Source: Thecamonas trahens ATCC 50062 (Eukaryota > Protista > Apusomonadida). From it: a stretch of DNA of 64,000 bases. Each line of letters opens with the position of its first letter. Within the stretch, counting starts at the first letter, position 1. The notes beneath the pieces were generated by a model that did no database searches, was not told the origin of the DNA, and was given only the letters and a program-made list of their open reading frames with translations. Position numbers and translations under genes: made by a program. The stretch lies in the NCBI RefSeq assembly GCF_000142905.1, contig NW_013657676.1:248001-312000 (forward strand), written 5' to 3'. This document shows, piece by piece, positions 23,622-34,129 of the stretch.

Positions 23622-26600
23622 TTACTGCCTGGCCTTTCCCTTGACCACAGCCACAATCCGCGGAACGACCATTGCGCCGACTGCAAGGGCGCATGAAGCC
23701 GCGACAGCATACCCGGCGTAATGGGCCCAGCTCGCTGCCGCCCGCGCGTGACGGAGGGCGCGGGCGCTCCCTGCCCGCGGCACAACGCCTGGTACAACGA
23801 GCGGTGCCGGTCTCAGGATCTCAAAGGGTGTGGGCCGTGGCCGGAGCGGCGATGACGGCACAGCGCCAGGCGAGTCGGGCATCGGAGCGAGGAGCGCGTC
23901 GACCCGCTCGAGCTCGTCTTCGAGCTTGGTGGTGTACGCTGCCGCCTGTGCGGCATAGAGACAGTCGAGGGCAGAGCGGATGCGTGCTGCAGAAAAGGCC
24001 GAGAGCTCGGCAGGGCTCGGCCGTGGCTCGGTCCGCGCCACGTGCTTGAGCCATGACGAGTAGTACCGGAGGAGCGCCTTGATGGCGCGGACGGCGCGCG
24101 GATGCTCCACGCCGAACTTGGCGCATGCAAGCGAGACCGCCTCCTGGACGTATGGCTCGCCAGTGGCATAATCGTGGCGTGTAGCGTAGACGGTCTGCAG
24201 TGCCGAAAGATTGTGGAGGACGTTGCGGTGTGAGGCGCCGAGTGAGAGCTTGTTGATCCGCAGCGCCTCGAGGAGCGCGGCCTCGGCGGCGGGGAGATCC
24301 TTGCGGTGGAGCCAGTACGAGCCGAGCGCCGAATGGTCCGAAGCAACCTCGGGATGGTTCGGCCCGAGCAGCGTCGAGCGGACTTCGAGTGCGCGCCCGA
24401 GGAGATTGTGCGCTAGATCGTACTCTCGGAGATAGAGGTGGAGCATGCCAACGTTGTGGAGCGTCCGTGCAGTCTCGGGGTGCATCTCGCCAAACCGCTG
24501 TGTGCGGATAGCGAGTGCCGCGTTGAGGTACCGCTTGGCCTCGTCAAAGTCCTTCAGTCGGCGATGAACGTTGCCGAGATTGTTGAGCACCGCCGCCACC
24601 AGCGGGTGGTTTTCATCAAAGAGAGCCGTCCGGATGTCGAGCGCCTGGTGAAGGAGCGCTGACGCAGTGTCGTACTCGTGACGATACGAGGCGATGAGTG
24701 CCATGTCATTGATGATTGCTGCGTACTCGGCGTGATGCGTTCCAACCGATGCCAAAACTATGTCGCGCGCCTGCTCGTAGAGCGACTCGGCACGCTCGTA
24801 GTCGTCAAACGAGTAAAAGTTGAGAAAGGCGAGATGCCGGAGCGTGTTGGCCACCAGCGGGTGGTCGTGGCCAAAGAGGTCGCGGCGGATGGCGAGCGCC
24901 TGCTCGAGCTCGTCCTCAGACGCGTTGTAGTTGGACTCGGCGCCATAGACACTGGCAAGGAGCATGCGGGTAGCAGCGACGCCAGCAGACTCGGGGCCGG
25001 CCAACTCAGCCTTGATCGCAAGCGCCCGGGTGAGCGCCCGTCGAGCCTGGCCGTAGCGGCCCTGCGCCTGACGCAGCTGGCCGACAAGGTCGAGGCACGC
25101 CGCACGGACATCTGCCACGCCAGACGTCGCCCGCCCGTGGTCAGGCGCTTCCATGGCCTCCAGCACCTCAAGAGCATGTCGGAGCAACGCGTCCGCCTTG
25201 GCGTACTGCGCCATCTCGCGGCAAACCGAGGCGAGGCCGAGCTCAACTCGCGCTTGGACCAGTGAGCCCTCGTCCGAGCTCCCCAGCTCGGCAGCCTCGG
25301 CAAGGAGCGCGTGTGCGCCGTGGTAGTGGCACGCCTGCAGCTGCGCCATGCCGTACTCGTACAGACTCTCCGTCAAAACAGGAACGATGGCCGGCAGCCG
25401 CTTTGCGAGCCTGCGCCGTAGCTTGAGCGCAGCTTCAAAGGCCTCGGACGCCGGCGCGATCTGCCCGTCGCTGGCGTACGCCACTCCAAGCTCGTGGTGG
25501 ACAGCCGCGAGCTTGGAGTCTGTGGCATCGTGCGCCCACATGCGAGGCGAGAATAGCCGCGCGAGCGACGCCACCGGCGAGTCGATGCTCTCTGGATCGG
25601 CAGCGAGAAGCACCTTGCGAAGCGAGAGGACGAGTCCGATGTAGGTGGCTGGAGGGAAGCGTGCCCGCAGCAGCCGTCCGCCGGAAATGATCATCTGCGC
25701 CATCAGGTCCTCGGGCGGCGCCACGCCGCGAACAACTCGGAGCGCATCGAGCGAAGCCTGGACCTCGGCTGGCATCCACTGCGGCTGAGCCTGCGGTGGG
25801 GGCTGGTGCAGAGGCGCAAGCCCGACGCGAGGCTCGGGTCCTGCTGCCTCTAGCTCACACGGAAGCCGCGAGTACCGCACGCACTCTTCCAGCGCGTGCA
25901 TGATGCTCGCTTCGAGGTCGACAAACGCCCGAAAGGCGGCTGCAAAGTCAGGCAGCTCGGCGAGCTCGACCACTTTGTCCGCGCAATACTCGATGAACCG
26001 GGCCCGAAAGTACATGCCCGGCGCCTTTGGCCAGGCAGTAGCTTGTGGCTCCAAGGCGTCCGAGACGTGACCGACATCGCTACCGCGGGCCGGCACCGCA
26101 ATCCGTGGGCGATTTTCATGCGAGGGCCGCGGTCGGGCCGGCGACGGCGCAGCGGGCTGGGAGAGCTCGACGCGCGTCTCGGGCCCCGGCACTGAACCGG
26201 CGCCAAGGGCGGCGAGCTCGTGGACCACAAACTTGCGAACGAGTGGATGAAGCGAGTAGCGCCCAGTGCTTGGCGCGTAGCGGACGAGGAAGATGTGGTG
26301 AAGCTCGGCGAGAAGCTCCGACGCAGCATCGTGGTCAAGGCAGAGGACATGGGAAGCGGCGTCGACGTCAAAGTCTGCGTGGAACGTGGCGAGGCCTACA
26401 AAGTGCAGCTGCTGGGTGTGCGAGAGGGTGGCGAGCGAGGCAACAAGCGCAGCACCAAGCGACGAATCGGAGAGCGCAAAGAGATCGACGTTATTGAGAC
26501 GGTCAAGGAGCGGTTCGAGCGGGAGGTGAGCCCGCTTGCGGAGGAGTGCCGAGATGACTGTGAGCGCAAGCGGGAAGCCGCCCGCGAGGACGGCGACCGA

Positions 26601-28346
26601 CGACGCCTGGTCCGGCGAGAGCTCCGGATTGGCGTGCCGCAGAAAAGCAACCGAGTCGCTGTGGTCGAGCGGATCGAGGCGGACGTCGACGGCTGGGACA
26701 TCAGTGACAGCAATGGGCACCGCGGCGGTGACCACGACGCAGCAGGCCGATGACGGCAAGAGTTCGTGGACAAGCTTTGCCGACGGCGCGTCTTCGAGAA
26801 GCAGCAGCGATGGCTCGCCGTGGAAGCACGAGAGGTACAGGCCGTCGAGCTCGGCTGCGTGGACGGGCAGCGATCCGAGGTTGGGGTAAAAGGCGCGGAC
26901 GACAAAGGCGCGCGCTTCGGCAGGCGTGAGGTAGGTCGTCGGCGTGACCCGGAGCGAGATGGAAAACTGTCGCGGGTAGTCGTCGGAGAGACCGGCGACA
27001 AGCTGGCGGGCAAACGAGGCTTTGCCAATGCCGGGCGGTCCGGCGACAACAACAGCCTTGATGGGCGAGGCCTCGGACCGGATGTCGTCAAGGGTGGCAC
27101 CCACGAGCCCATCGCGGGCCGACGGGACCGAGCCGTGGGTGATGATCTTGTACTGTGAGGTGTTGAGGCGCGAGGTCGGGCCAGACGGCTGGGGCGGCGC
27201 ACCGAGGGCGGCAGCCGTGCCCGGTGGAGCGTTCATGCGCTCGAGAATGAGCTGCATCGGCATGACGTAGGTCGACGAGTCACGGCGAATGTATGCCGTC
27301 GGCTTGTTGCGGCCAATGAGATAGACCGGAGCCGGGCCGCGGGCAATGTGGAACTCGACAACAAAGGTGGGGTAGGCCGGTGCGTTGAGAACCGGGACAA
27401 AGCGAATGGCGATGAGCGACGAGTCAACAGGCGGCCACATGTCGTGAAGGACGCGGTCAGTGGCGAGGCGAAGGTCGTCGCGATTGGAGCGATTGAGGAC
27501 AACGCCCTTGATGACTCCGTCGTCGGTGACGCCAAAGTACACGCACCCGCCGTTGGTGTTGATGAGCGAGTTGAGGTACTTGGAGAGGTAGTCAGAAATG
27601 CGACGGACCGGAGTCCGCGCTCGCTGGACAGCCTTGAACTCGTGCATGCGGTCTTCGTCGTAGCCAATGATCGCGTCGTAGAGGTACGGATCCGGCGGTG
27701 TGTCCGACGACGGCAGAACGTGCTCGGGGACGCAAGCTGCGGCAGCAATGGCAAACTCGTCCGGCGCCGGGGACGGCGCACGCGAGCCAGCGGGTGTCGT
27801 CCGCGGCGGCGGGCCGCCAATGTCGTCGTACTCGACCACATTGAGCTCGTTGCCGCCGGGCTCGCCAGTCTCAGCACGACCCTCGTCCGCAGACAACACG
27901 GGCTTGGGCATGGCCGTCTCAACACCTGGCAAGCGCTGCGCCTCGCCTGCAAGGTCGCGGAGGACGGTGACAAAGGCTTGATCCGGATCGTCAGGCTCCG
28001 AGTCAGCGACGGGATGTGGCGAGTCCGGATCGTCGCCCGTGCCGCCGGCTGAGAACACAACGTCGGCCATCGAGCCGGTGGAGAAAGCCCCGCGCGGGGT
28101 GCCGTACGTCGACGGCGGGCCCGAGGCCGAGCCCGATCCTGGCGAGACCACGAGCGTGCCGGCCGGCGAAGACGATGGCGGGACGATCGTGAGCGACGGG
28201 ATGCGGCGGCGAGTGTGCGGGGTGTTAGCGGCGGTGGCAGGGCCAGGCGACGGCGAGGCTGGTGCAGGCGAAGGAGGCGTTGGCAAGTCGTGGTTGACCA
28301 CCGCGTCGTCGTCGTCGTCCCTGTGAATGGACGAGACACCACCCAT
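23622..28346 (-). CDS. NLR-like protein: Schlafen/AlbA_2 RNase + STAND NB-ARC ATPase + TPR repeats + C-terminal TM
   Basis: MGGVSS start; EDRMHEFK, LINTNGGCVYFGVTDDG, YIRRDSST (Schlafen core); GPPGIGKAS, LLLLEDA, GGFPLAL, YSLHPLVR (NB-ARC); about eight or more 42-aa TPRs (HPLVA..LNNLG, HPETARTLHNVG); hydrophobic tail YAGYAVAASCALAVGAMVV. Confidence 0.9.
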   Translation of the reverse strand: MGGVSSIHRDDDDDAVVNHDLPTPPSPAPASPSPGPATAANTPHTRRRIPSLTIVPPSSSPAGTLVVSPGSGSASGPPSTYGTPRGAFSTGSMADVVFSAGGTGDDPDSPHPVADSEPDDPDQAFVTVLRDLAGEAQRLPGVETAMPKPVLSADEGRAETGEPGGNELNVVEYDDIGGPPPRTTPAGSRAPSPAPDEFAIAAAACVPEHVLPSSDTPPDPYLYDAIIGYDEDRMHEFKAVQRARTPVRRISDYLSKYLNSLINTNGGCVYFGVTDDGVIKGVVLNRSNRDDLRLATDRVLHDMWPPVDSSLIAIRFVPVLNAPAYPTFVVEFHIARGPAPVYLIGRNKPTAYIRRDSSTYVMPMQLILERMNAPPGTAAALGAPPQPSGPTSRLNTSQYKIITHGSVPSARDGLVGATLDDIRSEASPIKAVVVAGPPGIGKASFARQLVAGLSDDYPRQFSISLRVTPTTYLTPAEARAFVVRAFYPNLGSLPVHAAELDGLYLSCFHGEPSLLLLEDAPSAKLVHELLPSSACCVVVTAAVPIAVTDVPAVDVRLDPLDHSDSVAFLRHANPELSPDQASSVAVLAGGFPLALTVISALLRKRAHLPLEPLLDRLNNVDLFALSDSSLGAALVASLATLSHTQQLHFVGLATFHADFDVDAASHVLCLDHDAASELLAELHHIFLVRYAPSTGRYSLHPLVRKFVVHELAALGAGSVPGPETRVELSQPAAPSPARPRPSHENRPRIAVPARGSDVGHVSDALEPQATAWPKAPGMYFRARFIEYCADKVVELAELPDFAAAFRAFVDLEASIMHALEECVRYSRLPCELEAAGPEPRVGLAPLHQPPPQAQPQWMPAEVQASLDALRVVRGVAPPEDLMAQMIISGGRLLRARFPPATYIGLVLSLRKVLLAADPESIDSPVASLARLFSPRMWAHDATDSKLAAVHHELGVAYASDGQIAPASEAFEAALKLRRRLAKRLPAIVPVLTESLYEYGMAQLQACHYHGAHALLAEAAELGSSDEGSLVQARVELGLASVCREMAQYAKADALLRHALEVLEAMEAPDHGRATSGVADVRAACLDLVGQLRQAQGRYGQARRALTRALAIKAELAGPESAGVAATRMLLASVYGAESNYNASEDELEQALAIRRDLFGHDHPLVANTLRHLAFLNFYSFDDYERAESLYEQARDIVLASVGTHHAEYAAIINDMALIASYRHEYDTASALLHQALDIRTALFDENHPLVAAVLNNLGNVHRRLKDFDEAKRYLNAALAIRTQRFGEMHPETARTLHNVGMLHLYLREYDLAHNLLGRALEVRSTLLGPNHPEVASDHSALGSYWLHRKDLPAAEAALLEALRINKLSLGASHRNVLHNLSALQTVYATRHDYATGEPYVQEAVSLACAKFGVEHPRAVRAIKALLRYYSSWLKHVARTEPRPSPAELSAFSAARIRSALDCLYAAQAAAYTTKLEDELERVDALLAPMPDSPGAVPSSPLRPRPTPFEILRPAPLVVPGVVPRAGSARALRHARAAASWAHYAGYAVAASCALAVGAMVVPRIVAVVKGKARQ

Positions 28347-28662
28347 GACTTGGGTATGATTGTAGAGTGGAGGTGGCAGCATTCGGCGAGTGGCGGCACA
28401 AGCACAAGCAGGTGCAGCTGGTGCTGGCAGGTGAGAGACAGACCGAACTGCCGTCACTTCCGCGTCCGAAACTAACCCAAACATCGACGCGGGTTTGGGT
28501 CACACGGACAGCCACGGCACGGGCCCCTCGGCTCCACGCAAACAAACAAGCACCGATACCCATCTCCCGGCCGACACAGTCCCACCCAGCTCGAGCCTCA
28601 CACACACACATCTTTTCTCCCACCTCAACCTCAAGTCCCCCGCTTTGAGAAACTGGTGCATT

Positions 28663-29772
28663 ATGGGCCAGGGCCATGCCAAGGAGGCAGAGATGCGGAC
28701 GCTTGCGGCGGCGCAGGAGGACACCCACTTTACCCTCTCCGAGGTCAAGCATCTGCGCAAGCATTACGAGCGGGTGTGCGGCGGATCGGAGCTGACTCGC
28801 GATCAGTTTGGCGAGCTTGTGGACGAGCTGCATCTTCCGGGACTCTCGGACTCGCGCGAGATGCTGGACGAGGTCTTTACCCTCTTTGACATCGACGAGT
28901 CGGACAGCGTCAACTTTAAGGATCTTCTCTCGGCGCTTTCCATCTGCGCACGCGGCTCGCTGGAGGAACGCATTCTGCTGGCCTTCCACATGTTTGGCGC
29001 CACGTCAGGCGGCGTGGTGTCGCGGGCATCGATGCTCAAGGTGCTGACCCACCTCGCGCCGCTCATCCGGTCGTCGGGCGAGGGCGTGCCGGGAGTGCTG
29101 CCTTCCGACGCCAGCAGCTCGATCAACAGTGCAGGTGTTGCCGACGCCGGCGTTGACATCGACGCCTTGTCGCAGTTTGTCGACACCATCTTTGCCGAGT
29201 GCGATCTTGATGCCGACGGCGCACTCAACATCCCCGAGTTTACGCGGGCCGTGCGTGCGACGCCGCAGCTGCTTGCCTTCATGGGCAACTTTGTGACGGC
29301 CGACACCGCCGCCAACCGGCCGCGCCGCTACCTAGTGGCGGTCGATGGTGGCGAATCATGCCACCGCGCGTTCCAGCACGTTCTCACTGACCTGCAGGGC
29401 CGTGAGCACTCCCTCCACCTCGTCGTCGTTGTCCGCAAGCTCGACCCGCGCCACAAGCCGCCGCTCATGTCCTCGGCCAAATTTGAGGCCGAGTTTGCTG
29501 CCCGCCACGATGCCATGCTCGCCACCATGCAGTCGTTTGAGGAGCTGGCTCACGAGGCCGGTGTCGCCCGCGTCGAGACCGAGGTCGTCCGCGACGTCGC
29601 CGAGGTCGGCCCGGCTATCATCGACGTCGCCCACCGCATCGACGCCGACGTCCTTGCCATGGGCTTTGAGGGCCAGTCTGGCCGCCAGCACAACTCTGCG
29701 GACGTCCATCTCGGCTATGTCGCCTCGTACTGCATCCAGCATGCCCACTGCTCGGTCCTCATCATCAAGTAA
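28663..29772 (+). CDS. Neuronal-calcium-sensor/calcineurin-B-like EF-hand protein fused to a universal stress protein domain
   Basis: MGQGHAK, THFTLSEV, EF loops DIDESDSVNFKD and DLDADGALNIPE, RGSLEERILLAF; USP YLVAVDGGE...DVLAMG...LGYVASYCIQHAHCSVLIIK. Confidence 0.85.
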   Translation: MGQGHAKEAEMRTLAAAQEDTHFTLSEVKHLRKHYERVCGGSELTRDQFGELVDELHLPGLSDSREMLDEVFTLFDIDESDSVNFKDLLSALSICARGSLEERILLAFHMFGATSGGVVSRASMLKVLTHLAPLIRSSGEGVPGVLPSDASSSINSAGVADAGVDIDALSQFVDTIFAECDLDADGALNIPEFTRAVRATPQLLAFMGNFVTADTAANRPRRYLVAVDGGESCHRAFQHVLTDLQGREHSLHLVVVVRKLDPRHKPPLMSSAKFEAEFAARHDAMLATMQSFEELAHEAGVARVETEVVRDVAEVGPAIIDVAHRIDADVLAMGFEGQSGRQHNSADVHLGYVASYCIQHAHCSVLIIK

Positions 29773-31113: not shown

Positions 31114-34100
31114 ATGCTCCAGTACAGCGGTACGCCCCTCCCTTCCTCTCCTCCCCTGCCCACACCCCCTTCTCCTCATTCCTTTGCTTGCTCTTTCCCC
31201 GTCACTCACCCCTCCCCCCTCTCCCCCTCCTCCGGCCGCAATCGACGATTCTACGACCTTTTCCAGGCGGAGCCAGCGGCGGGTCGTCGTCGTCGACGGC
31301 AGCGTCCGGACTCGTGGCCTACATCCGCAGCCTTCCGCCCAAGCCGGACAACACATTGCGCCTCTTCTCTCGCAAAGACTACTGGACAGTGGCTGGCGAT
31401 GACGCCCTGTTTGTGGCCATGGAGTACTACAAGACCAAAGCCGTCGTCCGCCACCTTGGCGGCGACGCCAGCTCGCCCGACGCCATCCCTCACGTCTCCC
31501 TCTCGCGCGGCATGTTCCAGGACACCGTCCGCGACCTGCTCATGAACCGTAGGCTCAAGGTCGAGGTACATGCCCGCCGGAGCGGTAAGTGGGCGCTGAC
31601 CGACACGGCATCGCCGGGCAACCTCAAGTGCTTTGAGGATCTGGTGTTCAAGGCCGCCGGCGCCAGCGCCGAGGCCGGCGAAGCATCGACGACCGCCGGT
31701 GCCAGCGCCATCGTCGCCGTCAAGGTCACGTCAGGACCGGCAGGCTCGGCCATTCTGGCGGCGGCCGCCGTCGACATTGCCGCTCGCCGCCTCCGTCTCG
31801 CGGAAATGCCGGAGAACGACCAGTTTACCAACTTTGAGGCGCTCCTCATCCAAACCGGTGCCTCGGAAGTCATTCTTCCGGCCAACCTCCCGCCGCAGAC
31901 CTCCAAGCGGCTGCTTGGCATCGCCCAAGCTGCTGGCGTCCTTGCCACCACCAAGTCGGCCTCGTCATTCTCGGCCAACAGCATCGAGCAGGACGTCCGC
32001 CGGCTCACCGGGCTTGACGCCGACAAGCCGCTCGCCGAGCTCGACGCGCGCGCCGCTGCCTCTGCTCTCGGTGCCCTCCTCAAGTACCTCGAGCTGCTGG
32101 ACGACCCCTCGCTGTACGGCAAGTACAAGCTCTCGGCGCTCAACCTCGCCGAGTACATGCGCCTCGACGCCGCTGCCCTTGCCGCCCTCCATCTCTTCGA
32201 GACCGGGCCCGGCGCGTCGTCGGCCTCGACCGGCGGCGGCTCGCTCTTCTCGCTCCTCAACAGGTGCAAGACCCCGCAGGGCTCGCGCAAGCTCCACCAG
32301 TGGATCAAGCAGCCGCTGCTGGACATTGTCAAGATCAACCGTCGCCTCGACCTTGTCGCCCTCTTTGTCGACGCAGTCGCCGTCCGCACCTCGCTCCACT
32401 CGGAGCTGCTCAAGACCGTCCCGGATCTCTTCCGTCTCGCCTCCAAGTTCCTCAAGTCGCGCGCCTCGCTCGAGGACATGGTCCGGCTCTACCAGGTCGC
32501 CGCCAAGCTCCCGGCCATCGTCGAGACGCTCAACTCATGGACGGGGCCGGGCGCGGAGCTCCTAGCCTCGGCCTTTGCCGTCCCGCTCGCCGAAGTCGCC
32601 ACAGACCTCAAGCCCTTCCAGCAGCTCGTCGAGTCCACCATCGACCTCGCCCGCGCAGACGCCCACGACTTTGTCATCCTCCGCTCCGTCGACGCCCAGC
32701 TCGACAAGCTCGCCACCGCCCGCGATGCCCTCATCGCCCGCATCGAGGCCATTCACGGCGACGTCAACGCCCGCCTCGCTGCAAAGGCCAAGGCCAAGTC
32801 GTCCGCCGCTTTTGTCAAGCTCGAGGTCAACGACCAGCACGGCTACTACATGCGCATCGCCCGCTCCAAGGAGAAGATCCTCCGCGGCGACGCCCGCTAC
32901 ACCACCCTCGAGACCCGCAAGGACGGTGTCAAGTTTGCCACCCCGACCTGCTCAAGCTCTCCGCCTCGTACCGCACCACCGTCAAGGCCTACGCCGCCCA
33001 GCAGGCCGAGATCGAAGCCAAGGTCCTCGGCATCGGCGCCACCTACACCGCCGTGTTTGAGGACCTCAACGACATCGTTGCCTCGCTCGACGTCCTCGTC
33101 GCCCTCGCAGAAGCCTCGCTCTCCGCGCCCATCCCCTACATCCGCCCCACCCTCGTTCCGCACGGCACCGCCGGCCTCTCGCTCATCGACTCGCGCCACC
33201 CGTGCCTCGAGGCCATGCCCGACATTCAGTTTATCCCCAACAACGTCGAGCTTGGCCCGCCCGGCGACAAGCGCCTCCTCCTCATGACCGGGCCCAACAT
33301 GGGCGGCAAGTCGACGTACATCCGCCAGGTCGGCGTCATCGTCCTCATGGCACAAATCGGCTGCTTCGTCCCCGCATCCTCCGCCACCATCCCGCTCGTC
33401 GACTGCATCCTCGCTCGCGTCGGCGCCGGCGACTCGCAGCTCCGCGGCGTCTCCACCTTTATGGCAGAGATGCTCGAGACCGCCTCCATCCTCGCCACCG
33501 CCTCGCCGGCCTCGCTCATCATCATCGACGAGCTCGGCCGCGGCACCTCGACCTACGACGGATACGGCCTCGCCTACGCCATCGCCGAGCACATTGCCAA
33601 GGACCTCGGCTCGCTCTGCCTCTTTGCCACACACTTTCATGAGCTCACCCAGCTCGAGTCGCTCCTCCCTAGGGCCGTCACCAACGTCCACGTCACTGCC
33701 CACACCGCAGACGATGCCCTCACCCTCCTCTACAAGGTCCGCCCTGGCCCGTGCGACCGCTCCTTTGGCATTCACGTCGCACGCCTCGCCCACTTTCCGC
33801 CGCGCGTCATCAACATGGCCAAGCGCAAGGCTGAAGCCCTCGAAGACTTTGACTCGATGGCCGCGGGCCTCGAGTCGGGTGACTTGCCGGCGCCCAAGCG
33901 CGCAAAGAACCTTTCCGCAGACATTGTCGCCGCCGGCGAAGCCGCCATCAAGGACTTTCTCGCCGCAGCCAAGACCCAGCTGGCGGGCACGGTCCAGCTC
34001 GACGACGCCCTGGCCGCAGAGCTCTCCGATGCCGACCGCTCCGCCCTCTCTCCGCTCATTGCCAAGCTCCGCAACTCGTCCAACCCATACGTCGTCTCGC

Positions 34101-34129
34101 TCCTCGACTCGTTTGCCGTGCAAAGCTGA
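31114..34129 (+). CDS. MSH2: DNA mismatch repair protein MSH2; intron ~31130-31266; apparent 1-nt frameshift at 32941-32944
   Basis: LRLFSRKDYWTVAGDDA, ASPGNL..FED, YMRLDAAA, CKTPQGSR..QWIKQPL, TGPNMGGKSTYIRQ, GVSTFMAEMLET, DELGRGTSTYDG, SFGIHVA. Confidence 0.97.

Follow-up and report, generated by a model that had tools for sequence, protein, structure and literature searches.

Schlafen/AlbA_2 domains have been proven to act as effectors of STAND proteins in animals and are predicted to do so in bacteria (PMC12680541; bioRxiv 10.1101/2022.07.19.500537). SAMD9 and SAMD9L have the domain order SAM–AlbA_2–SIR2–STAND–TPR–OB, in which AlbA_2 is an active nuclease, and the bacterial Avs9 protein mirrors this arrangement and kills E. 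coli via the same site; the function ascribed to the SAMD9/Avs9 proteins is antiviral tRNA cleavage or cell killing (PMC12680541). In another bacterial protein, bNACHT34, the STAND NTPase is headed by a Schlafen domain (bioRxiv 10.1101/2022.07.19.500537). The Schlafens of bacteria are tRNases that a trigger activates, and RorSlfn5 is an oligomeric enzyme of this kind (PMC13056530). An Ex4ExK motif (defined in PMC13056530) and an acidic site are needed for tRNA cleavage or killing by SLFN11, RorSlfn5, SAMD9/9L and Avs9 (PMC13056530; PMC12680541). A survey of protozoa, algae, fungi and plants found no SAMD9/Avs9-like matches (PMC12680541). Here we describe a gene of the apusomonad protist Thecamonas trahens ATCC 50062 whose predicted product, referred to below as P0001, combines a single Schlafen lobe with an NB-ARC-type nucleotide-binding oligomerization domain (NOD), a TPR array and a predicted C-terminal tail anchor. 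The gene lies within a stretch of 64,000 nucleotides (the window) that corresponds to positions 248,001 to 312,000 of contig NW_013657676.1, and all coordinates below refer to that window.

Domain architecture of P0001

The order of effector, NOD and then repeats, first proposed in a sequence-only reading of the open reading frame (ORF), holds for P0001, and its Schlafen/AlbA_2 core was found where that reading had put it. The Pfam model SLFN_AlbA_2 (PF04326) matches residues 231-362 (27261-27656) at E 1.1e-9 and 39.2 bits against a cut-off of 25.3, and the same domain scores 45.3 bits when the whole genome is scanned with this model. An AlphaFold2 model of residues 220-405, with a mean predicted local distance difference test score (pLDDT) of 90.2, was matched by Foldseek to SLFN12, SLFN11, SLFN5, SLFN14 and SLFN13 and to the SAMD9 tRNase domain (probability 1.00, E 1e-8 to 1e-6), the last of these giving the top TM-score (TMq 0.68). 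A profile of the Schlafen family in turn matches the catalytic C-lobe of SLFN13, SLFN14, SLFN11 and SLFN12 at E 5e-13 to 1e-10. The protein has one AlbA_2 unit, which pairs with the SLFN C-lobe (chain residues about 190-290) and not with the N-lobe, and no helicase domain was matched by Pfam in P0001.

The segments EDRMHEFK and GVTDD had been read as counterparts of the SLFN catalytic residues, and alignment places them there. The second Glu, E236, falls on the Ala of the deposited SLFN14-E211A structure, and D275 pairs with SLFN14 D249 and with the Asp of the SLFN13 GVDD segment. The sequence-only reading had suggested a profile search for AlbA_2 as a check and had named misaligned catalytic residues as a refuting outcome; the AlbA_2 search was positive and the residues do align. 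Across the family alignment (A4) the motif columns E12, E17 and K19 are invariant and the downstream Asp is nearly invariant. The Schlafen lobe, with these residues intact, is the predicted RNase output of the protein. A homodimer prediction of the domain gave no verdict and weighs neither way on binding.

Recognition of the NOD requires more than the single sequence. When the P0001 NOD and arm were compared with the PDB by phmmer, no significant match was obtained, and Pfam NB-ARC scores 12.2 bits on P0001 against a cut-off of 23.5; NACHT (12 bits) and nSTAND3 are sub-threshold as well. A NOD profile built from the relatives, however, matches the NOD-arm-TPR region of AfsR (8k60; E 1.8e-111, profile positions 111-753) and gives E values of 1e-17 to 1e-18 with the plant NLRs ADR2, NRC4 and Roq1. 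For residues 415-770, an AlphaFold2 model (pLDDT 84.8, disordered after about residue 720) retrieves Apaf-1, NRC3, NRC4, WRR4A, Roq1, ZAR1 and CED-4 by Foldseek at about E 1e-12 to 1e-9, with TMq up to 0.67. Five relatives (P0008, P0010, P0012, P0017 and P0024) score over the Pfam NB-ARC cut-off themselves. We call the domain a divergent NB-ARC because the single sequence matches nothing in the PDB while the profile and the fold do match, the call resting on relatives, family profile and predicted fold. Of the STAND NB-ARC module claimed earlier, then, the motifs, the fold and the profile homology stand, but the Pfam score stays below its cut-off. The NOD model lies at a root-mean-square deviation of 4-5 Å from open oligomeric states (the active apoptosome and resistosomes) and of about 16 Å from closed, ADP-bound Apaf-1 or NRC2; this resemblance to the open state may reflect modelling bias or the degenerate MHD/ADP site.

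The nucleotide site itself is altered. The sequence-only reading had pointed to an anomalous GKA ending of Walker A; the anomaly is real, and two further positions, in the TAA and LHP segments, are also replaced. Residue counts were taken from a 64-sequence NOD alignment (A3) that includes P0002 and P0007, two relatives which also have a TPR array and a predicted tail anchor. The final Walker A column holds Thr in 44 of the 64 sequences, Ser in 15, Ala in three and Gly in one, with Ala in P0001, Gly in P0002 and Thr in P0007. At sensor I, Arg is present in 57/64 (Ala, Ser and His in the same three proteins), and the MHD column is Asp in 51/64 (Pro, Thr and Asp, respectively). P0001 retains the Lys of Walker A, the ED of Walker B, GLPL and the His of MHD, and amoebozoan relatives mostly retain GK[ST] and TSR, so that in this alignment the triple loss is specific to the lineage of P0001 and P0002. 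NB-ARC proteins use the Walker A hydroxyl to bind Mg2+ and the sensor-I Arg to contact the gamma-phosphate, and their MHD motif holds ADP. Because these three residues are replaced, ATP hydrolysis has probably been lost from the P0001 NOD, and a classical ATP-hydrolysing switch is doubtful; nucleotide binding may persist.

The proposed TPR repeats were recovered over about residues 940-1420 by Pfam TPR_12 (E 2.7e-51), TPR_10 (E 3.3e-40) and TPR_NPHP3 (E 9e-37), and the NCBIfam model FxSxx_TPR also matches (E 9e-33); the NOD-family profile alignment runs on through the AfsR arm and TPR. The earlier claims about the two termini met with different fates. The MGxxxS start, read as a myristoylation consensus, is present in P0001 (MGGVSS fits the consensus) but is not conserved: the in-frame start of P0002 reads MSDSDSEE, and P0007 begins at the Schlafen domain (MTTNFYY). 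The C-terminal transmembrane helix, on the other hand, recurs in both. Within the last 60 residues the best 19-residue Kyte-Doolittle window reaches 2.08 in P0001, 1.99 in P0002 and 1.46 in P0007, with Arg/Lys next in each, and the P0001 chain, with its hydrophobic helix and basic tail, ends …AVGAMVVPRIVAVVKGKARQ. The N-terminus of P0001 is hydrophilic and the helix lies within about 35 residues of the C-terminus, a pattern that fits a predicted tail anchor conserved in P0002 and P0007. Moderate hydrophobicity together with a basic tail is usual for tail-anchored proteins of the mitochondrial outer membrane or of peroxisomes. The disordered N-terminus, otherwise unconserved, has two brief stretches in common with P0002, Y-x-TPRGA at about residues 81-87 and GGPPPRT at about 177-183. 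They may serve as linear motifs, such as an SH3/WW ligand or a site of proline-directed phosphorylation.

Table 1. Features of the P0001 gene and protein, with window coordinates
Feature	Residues	Position	Strand	Basis
Complete coding sequence (1574 codons + stop, no intron needed)	1-1574	23622..28346	(-)	ORF list, public model of 1574 aa, G+C at third codon positions (GC3)
In-frame 46-codon upstream extension to an earlier ATG, likeliest 5' untranslated region		28347..28484	(-)	GC3 0.43, strain indels
Disordered N-terminus, rich in Pro/Ala/Ser/Gly/Asp	1-219	27690..28346	(-)	Composition, alignment A1
Single-lobe Schlafen/AlbA_2 domain	220-385	27192..27689	(-)	Pfam PF04326, AlphaFold2, Foldseek, profile
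EDRMHEFK, Ex4ExK catalytic motif	E231, E236, K238	27633..27656	(-)	Alignment to SLFN13/14/11/12
GVTDDG, downstream catalytic Asp	D275-D276	27519..27524	(-)	Alignment to SLFN14 D249 and SLFN13 GVDD
Divergent NB-ARC-type NOD (NBD-HD1-WHD)	419-715	26202..27092	(-)	AlphaFold2, Foldseek, profile, relatives
Walker A GPPGIGKA (Lys kept, Ser/Thr to Ala)	436-443	27018..27041	(-)	Alignment A3
Walker B LLLLED (E518, D519)	514-519	26790..26807	(-)	Alignment A3
RNBS-B/sensor I, TAA for TSR		26721..26729	(-)	Alignment A3
GGFPLAL (GLPL motif)	589-595	26562..26582	(-)	Alignment A3
LHP, MHD equivalent (His kept, Asp to Pro)	699-701	26244..26252	(-)	Alignment A3
Pro-rich disordered insert between WHD and arm	716-788	25983..26201	(-)	pLDDT <50; poorly conserved in alignment A1
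Helical arm and TPR_12/TPR_10 array, about 10-11 repeats	789-1425	24072..25982	(-)	Pfam, NCBIfam, AfsR profile
Helical C-terminal extension and Pro-rich linker	1426-1539	23730..24071	(-)	Alignment A1
C-terminal hydrophobic helix, then basic tail …PRIVAVVKGKARQ	1540-1574	23625..23729	(-)	Hydropathy, relatives

P0001 is the public T. trahens gene model for this coding sequence, and the earlier description of one intronless ORF starting at MGGVSS agrees with that model, with the GC3 and with the contigs from RNA libraries, among which no run contained a splice joint over the gene. GC3 is 0.72-0.79 for all ORF segments from the MGGVSS start codon at 28346 to the stop, or about 0.77 throughout. The minus-strand ORF is open without a break across 23622-28484, and the ATG at 28484 was considered as the start and rejected because GC3 drops to 0.43 in the extension and near-identical strain contigs carry +8/-6 indels at 28382-28396, which would destroy the frame if it were coding; the extension is most likely 5' untranslated region. 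The gene is single copy in the 28.7 Mb assembly. Contigs of 151-228 nt from two metatranscriptome runs of one study are 100% identical to it over 23934-25466 and 28157-28293, and matches in two small runs, labelled 'organism A', extend over 24207-26387 and 27447-28700.

Upstream, a divergent neighbour at 28663-29772 (+), separated from the P0001 gene by a head-to-head intergenic region of 316 bp, encodes an EF-hand plus USP-like protein that also begins with Met-Gly (MGQGHAK). Beyond it lies MSH2 (31188-34129, +), which is divided between a pair of ORFs, 31188-33287 and 32264-34129, that overlap and differ in frame; the public MSH2 model of 949 aa spans both, which implies an intron or a frame change in this otherwise intron-poor stretch.

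Relatives of P0001 and the NB-ARC genes of T. trahens

A word-indexed protein search returned one full-length match, P0002 (1448 aa), from a Tara Oceans marine metagenome contig that also bears eukaryote-type genes (thioredoxin/ERp29). The two loci are not syntenic, their upstream neighbours being unrelated. Because P0002 is 46% identical over its full length and has the same architecture, a chance ORF is ruled out; the P0001 gene is a real one, with a solid domain assignment.

The sequence-only reading had suggested looking for the same architecture in other eukaryotes and in bacteria, and searches of this kind uncovered both a protist clade and a bacterial counterpart. An exhaustive HMMER search with residues 220-770 gave 9082 hits, among them about 30 representatives that cover both the Schlafen and the NTPase parts, a family that the word-indexed search had not revealed. 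The core shared by the protist proteins is about 480 residues long (E 1e-36 to 1e-51) and has the same ED.xHEFK motif; with E values of 1e-22 to 1e-30, the search also reached more than 100 representatives of NB-ARC–TPR type. The sources include Amoebozoa (Cavostelium, Mastigamoeba, Pelomyxa with two proteins, Mastigella, Arcella and Endostelium), the ichthyosporean Creolimax, the metamonads Barthelona and Paratrimastix, marine metagenomes and the unplaced 'Eukaryota sp. GEM-RC1'. Proteins of Monocercomonoides and Dysnectes are weaker cases, with a Schlafen match and a P-loop but no match to the NTPase query. The annotations of these proteins are automatic ('SARP family', 'nb-arc domain containing' or hypothetical). 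Most protist relatives are 630-860 aa long, with no TPR array detected and no C-terminal transmembrane helix; the core, the TPR array and the tail anchor occur together only in P0001, P0002 and P0007, the last encoded beside a Tctex-1 dynein gene on a contig that is eukaryotic.

Some relatives have other partners or arrangements. P0014 of Paratrimastix pyriformis (2478 aa) is annotated as a GCN2-like eIF2-alpha kinase and has the Schlafen and NTPase parts at 1694-2268. P0032 and P0036 have a cold-shock domain followed by the Schlafen domain, and in P0006 (2337 aa) Schlafen fragments recur about 18 times.

A maximum-likelihood tree was built from 129 NODs, of which 21 are fused to a Schlafen domain. 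A branch with SH-aLRT 99 separates 20 of these 21, including that of P0001, from 105 AfsR/SARP-type NB-ARC–TPR proteins. The tree comes from a quick search under LG+G4 in which several rows were odd in composition, and is taken as indicative only that the eukaryotic Schlafen–NB-ARC NODs form one clade with P0001. The bacterial counterpart, P0030 (L023:335-3373), combines SLFN_AlbA_2 and NB-ARC with TPR_12 and is encoded among compactly arranged bacterial genes; its NOD falls within the NB-ARC–TPR group with named bacterial proteins, the P0001 NOD grouping elsewhere. An ESM Atlas cluster, mostly of Pseudomonadota, also combines SLFN_AlbA_2 with NB-ARC and is a lead only; the genes of this cluster and of P0030 may be candidate Avs-like defence genes. 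A scan of bacterial genomes with P0030 found only an actinobacterial NB-ARC–TPR relative, with no Schlafen domain.

At least 21 other NB-ARC matches over the Pfam cut-off are found in the T. trahens genome (contigs C97, C64, C59, C22, C17, C70, C30, C53, C11, C15 and C67; loci L011-L022). Their head domains were judged from eleven long ORFs that were scanned. Five of the eleven are TIR_2–NB-ARC–WD40, and four have kinase heads: two kinase–NB-ARC–WD40, one kinase–NB-ARC–RWD and one kinase–NB-ARC that is incomplete at the end of its stretch. NB-ARC and WD40 without a TIR match are found at L013, and a long open frame on C70 has WD40, NB-ARC and TIR in another order and may span more than one gene. 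By these domain matches T. trahens has a modular NLR-like repertoire with a varying head, of which P0001 is a divergent single-copy outlier. Such a repertoire makes a role for P0001 in conflict or cell death more plausible, without proving it, and an NLR-like role is likewise plausible in this genome. A second PF04326 match in the assembly (C76:9271-9624; L003, ORF 1375-2622) was considered as a paralogue and rejected, as it lies on a contig of bacterial type. By eye, its neighbours resemble bacterial mobile-element genes and include a DUF736-like protein; C76 has the look of contaminating bacterial DNA or of a recent insertion.

Mechanism and alternative explanations

The reading that we put forward is that P0001 is a tail-anchored STAND platform that activates its Schlafen RNase by induced proximity, through a NOD that probably lacks ATP hydrolysis; we judge the chances of this to be evenly balanced. 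The Schlafen lobe would provide the output, the NOD would be the oligomerization module, and the arm and TPR array would serve for input or autoinhibition. At rest, the TPR array and arm would keep the NOD closed at an organelle membrane, on its cytosolic side. Binding of a ligand to the TPR array, whether a protein of a virus or parasite or a molecule that arises in stress, would free the NOD to multimerize, and the Schlafen lobes so gathered would become an active Mn/Mg-dependent nuclease. The nuclease would cut tRNA or rRNA and thereby stop translation, either locally or throughout the cell. In the P0001 lineage the switch would perhaps be a nucleotide-binding-only or a nucleotide-independent oligomerizer. 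The protein has the domains, folds, conserved catalytic residues, family membership and conserved tail anchor set out above; to these we would add, as what we infer, its RNA target, trigger, oligomerization and immune role. The pathogen sensing, tRNA cleavage and abortive-infection-like shutdown proposed in the sequence-only reading would form part of such a role.

Several observations weigh against this proposal. Three nearly invariant residues of the NOD nucleotide site are replaced in P0001 and in its closest relative, P0002. A single-copy gene with a 46%-identical full-length relative is unlike a fast-diversifying, expanded receptor family. Most amoebozoan relatives are without a TPR array, and the sensor module is therefore not family-wide. 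PADLOC defence models applied to P0001 gave only a match to a generic TPR model (E 8e-9) and none for a Schlafen domain with a NOD. Finally, the metatranscriptome contigs, which prove neither transcription nor strand, suggest no more firmly than as a possibility that the gene is transcribed.

The chief rival holds that P0001 is a housekeeping or stress RNase on an organelle, which would cleave tRNA or rRNA upon a nutrient, redox or translation cue, with the NOD and TPR array as a scaffold. The single copy of the gene and the preservation of the architecture and tail anchor in P0002 at 46% identity speak for this, as does the degenerate NTPase site, which suggests a scaffold over a switch. The company kept by other relatives points the same way: in P0014 the Schlafen-NTPase unit is joined to an annotated GCN2-like kinase, a translation-stress sensor, and elsewhere the Schlafen domain is joined with a cold-shock domain. 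However, the characterised combinations of Schlafen/AlbA_2 with STAND are all defence or cell-death factors (PMC12680541, PMC13056530), and other T. trahens NB-ARC genes have the TIR heads that are typical of immune and cell-death systems. Taking both sides together, we regard a housekeeping role as unlikely, though it deserves to be kept in view.

Still less probable, in our judgment, is that the Schlafen domain is a non-cleaving binder of nucleic acid, comparable to SLFN5 or to the SAMD9 AlbA_2 domain in the role of a dsDNA/RNA binder; the protein would then sense or tether nucleic acid at the membrane and leave the output to partners of the NOD or TPR array. Foldseek did match the model to the structure of the hSAMD9 DNA-binding domain with DNA (7ksp) and to SLFN5 structures, one of which bears a title that names ssRNA cleaving as well as DNA binding; AfsR, of homologous architecture, binds DNA with its N-terminal domain, and a degenerate NOD would fit an adaptor. 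Against this, the conservation of three or four acidic residues and the Lys in P0001 and its family is hard to explain without catalysis, and a role as transcription factor is unlikely for a protein with a tail anchor. An artefact (a chance GC-rich ORF, two fused genes, a pseudogene or contamination) is effectively refuted: GC-rich DNA does yield many spurious long ORFs, several of which overlap this gene in the ORF list, and at least one contig of the assembly, C76, looks bacterial and carries an AlbA_2 gene, but homology extends over the whole length, coding GC3 is uniform, the 664-kb contig of the P0001 gene also holds the eukaryotic genes MSH2, eIF2D and RecQ, P0002 lies on a separate contig with eukaryote-type genes, and P0007 adjoins Tctex-1.

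Tentatively, and with more doubt than confidence, we suggest that P0001 and its approximately 30 relatives constitute an undescribed Schlafen-armed NB-ARC family that spans Apusomonadida, Ichthyosporea, Amoebozoa and Metamonada, in which AlbA_2 was joined to STAND independently for a third time, beside SAMD9/9L and Avs9, and that the apusomonad branch gained the TPR sensor and the organelle tail anchor and lost ATP hydrolysis. If this is true, a close unicellular relative of animals and fungi would possess a MAVS-like, membrane-resident and nucleotide-independent tRNase immune platform. The pairing of an AlbA_2 tRNase with a STAND switch, antiviral in animals and cell-killing in bacteria, has in P0001 and its protist clade a comparable design in unicellular eukaryotes, built on a different STAND clade, NB-ARC. 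Thecamonas belongs to the sister lineage of the opisthokonts, and with its TIR- and kinase-headed NB-ARC genes T. trahens is useful for asking how NLR-like immunity and Schlafen effectors stood before animals. P0001 also raises the questions of whether an NB-ARC NOD can work without hydrolysis and of the organelle at which it would act.

Comparison with known systems

The arrangement of P0001 has counterparts in several described families, each of which it resembles in part. Like mammalian SLFN11, SLFN12, SLFN13 and SLFN14, it has the homologous catalytic C-lobe with the same fold. The mammalian family is recognised by two lobes, which form a horseshoe, a linker/SWADL region and a group III helicase, whereas P0001 has one lobe, no SWADL or linker and no helicase, and regulation would fall to its NB-ARC–TPR part. 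In having a single-lobe Schlafen effector joined to a sensor, it is closer to bacterial pSlfn (RorSlfn5), bNACHT34 and P0030, from all of which it differs in being eukaryotic, in having no NACHT domain and in adding a tail anchor and an N-terminus that is disordered. The three Pfam domains of P0030 are those of P0001, in which NB-ARC is sub-threshold.

The NOD, arm and TPR array are homologous as a whole to those of AfsR/SARP-type and of fungal and bacterial NB-ARC–TPR proteins. Unlike AfsR, however, P0001 has a Schlafen head in place of the SARP DNA-binding domain, and its nucleotide site is degenerate. The protist Schlafen–NB-ARC proteins share the core of P0001 and differ in mostly having neither TPR nor transmembrane helix and in keeping GK[ST] and TSR.

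The comparison with SAMD9 and Avs9 is the closest in design. All have an AlbA_2/Schlafen head, a STAND P-loop NTPase, a TPR region and a conserved acidic catalytic site, but P0001 has no Pfam match to SIR2, SAM or OB and adds a tail anchor. The linker from the Schlafen domain to the NOD, about 33 residues, leaves too little room for a SIR2 domain. The NOD is of the NB-ARC/AfsR type, and is set apart from the SAMD9 NTPase by its own fold and profile, not by direct comparison. In sequence, it is SLFN11-14 rather than SAMD9 that the Schlafen domain matches; by TM-score the best match is SAMD9. On these sequence features P0001 falls outside the SAMD9/Avs9 family.

A literature search for Schlafen with NB-ARC, in protists and in Thecamonas, found the architecture undescribed; Burroughs & Aravind 2020, outside that search, may mention it. 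The sequence-only reading knew of no characterised eukaryotic Schlafen-NB-ARC-TPR protein. That statement calls for qualification: among eukaryotic proteins, SAMD9/9L have been characterised as AlbA_2–STAND–TPR tRNases, with Avs9 and bNACHT34 as their bacterial counterparts. P0001 is less unprecedented than had been supposed, and offers a concrete and testable way into the NLR-like proteins that unicellular eukaryotes have armed with Schlafen domains. Its clade of protist Schlafen–NB-ARC proteins is apparently an undescribed solution that runs parallel to that of SAMD9 and Avs9.

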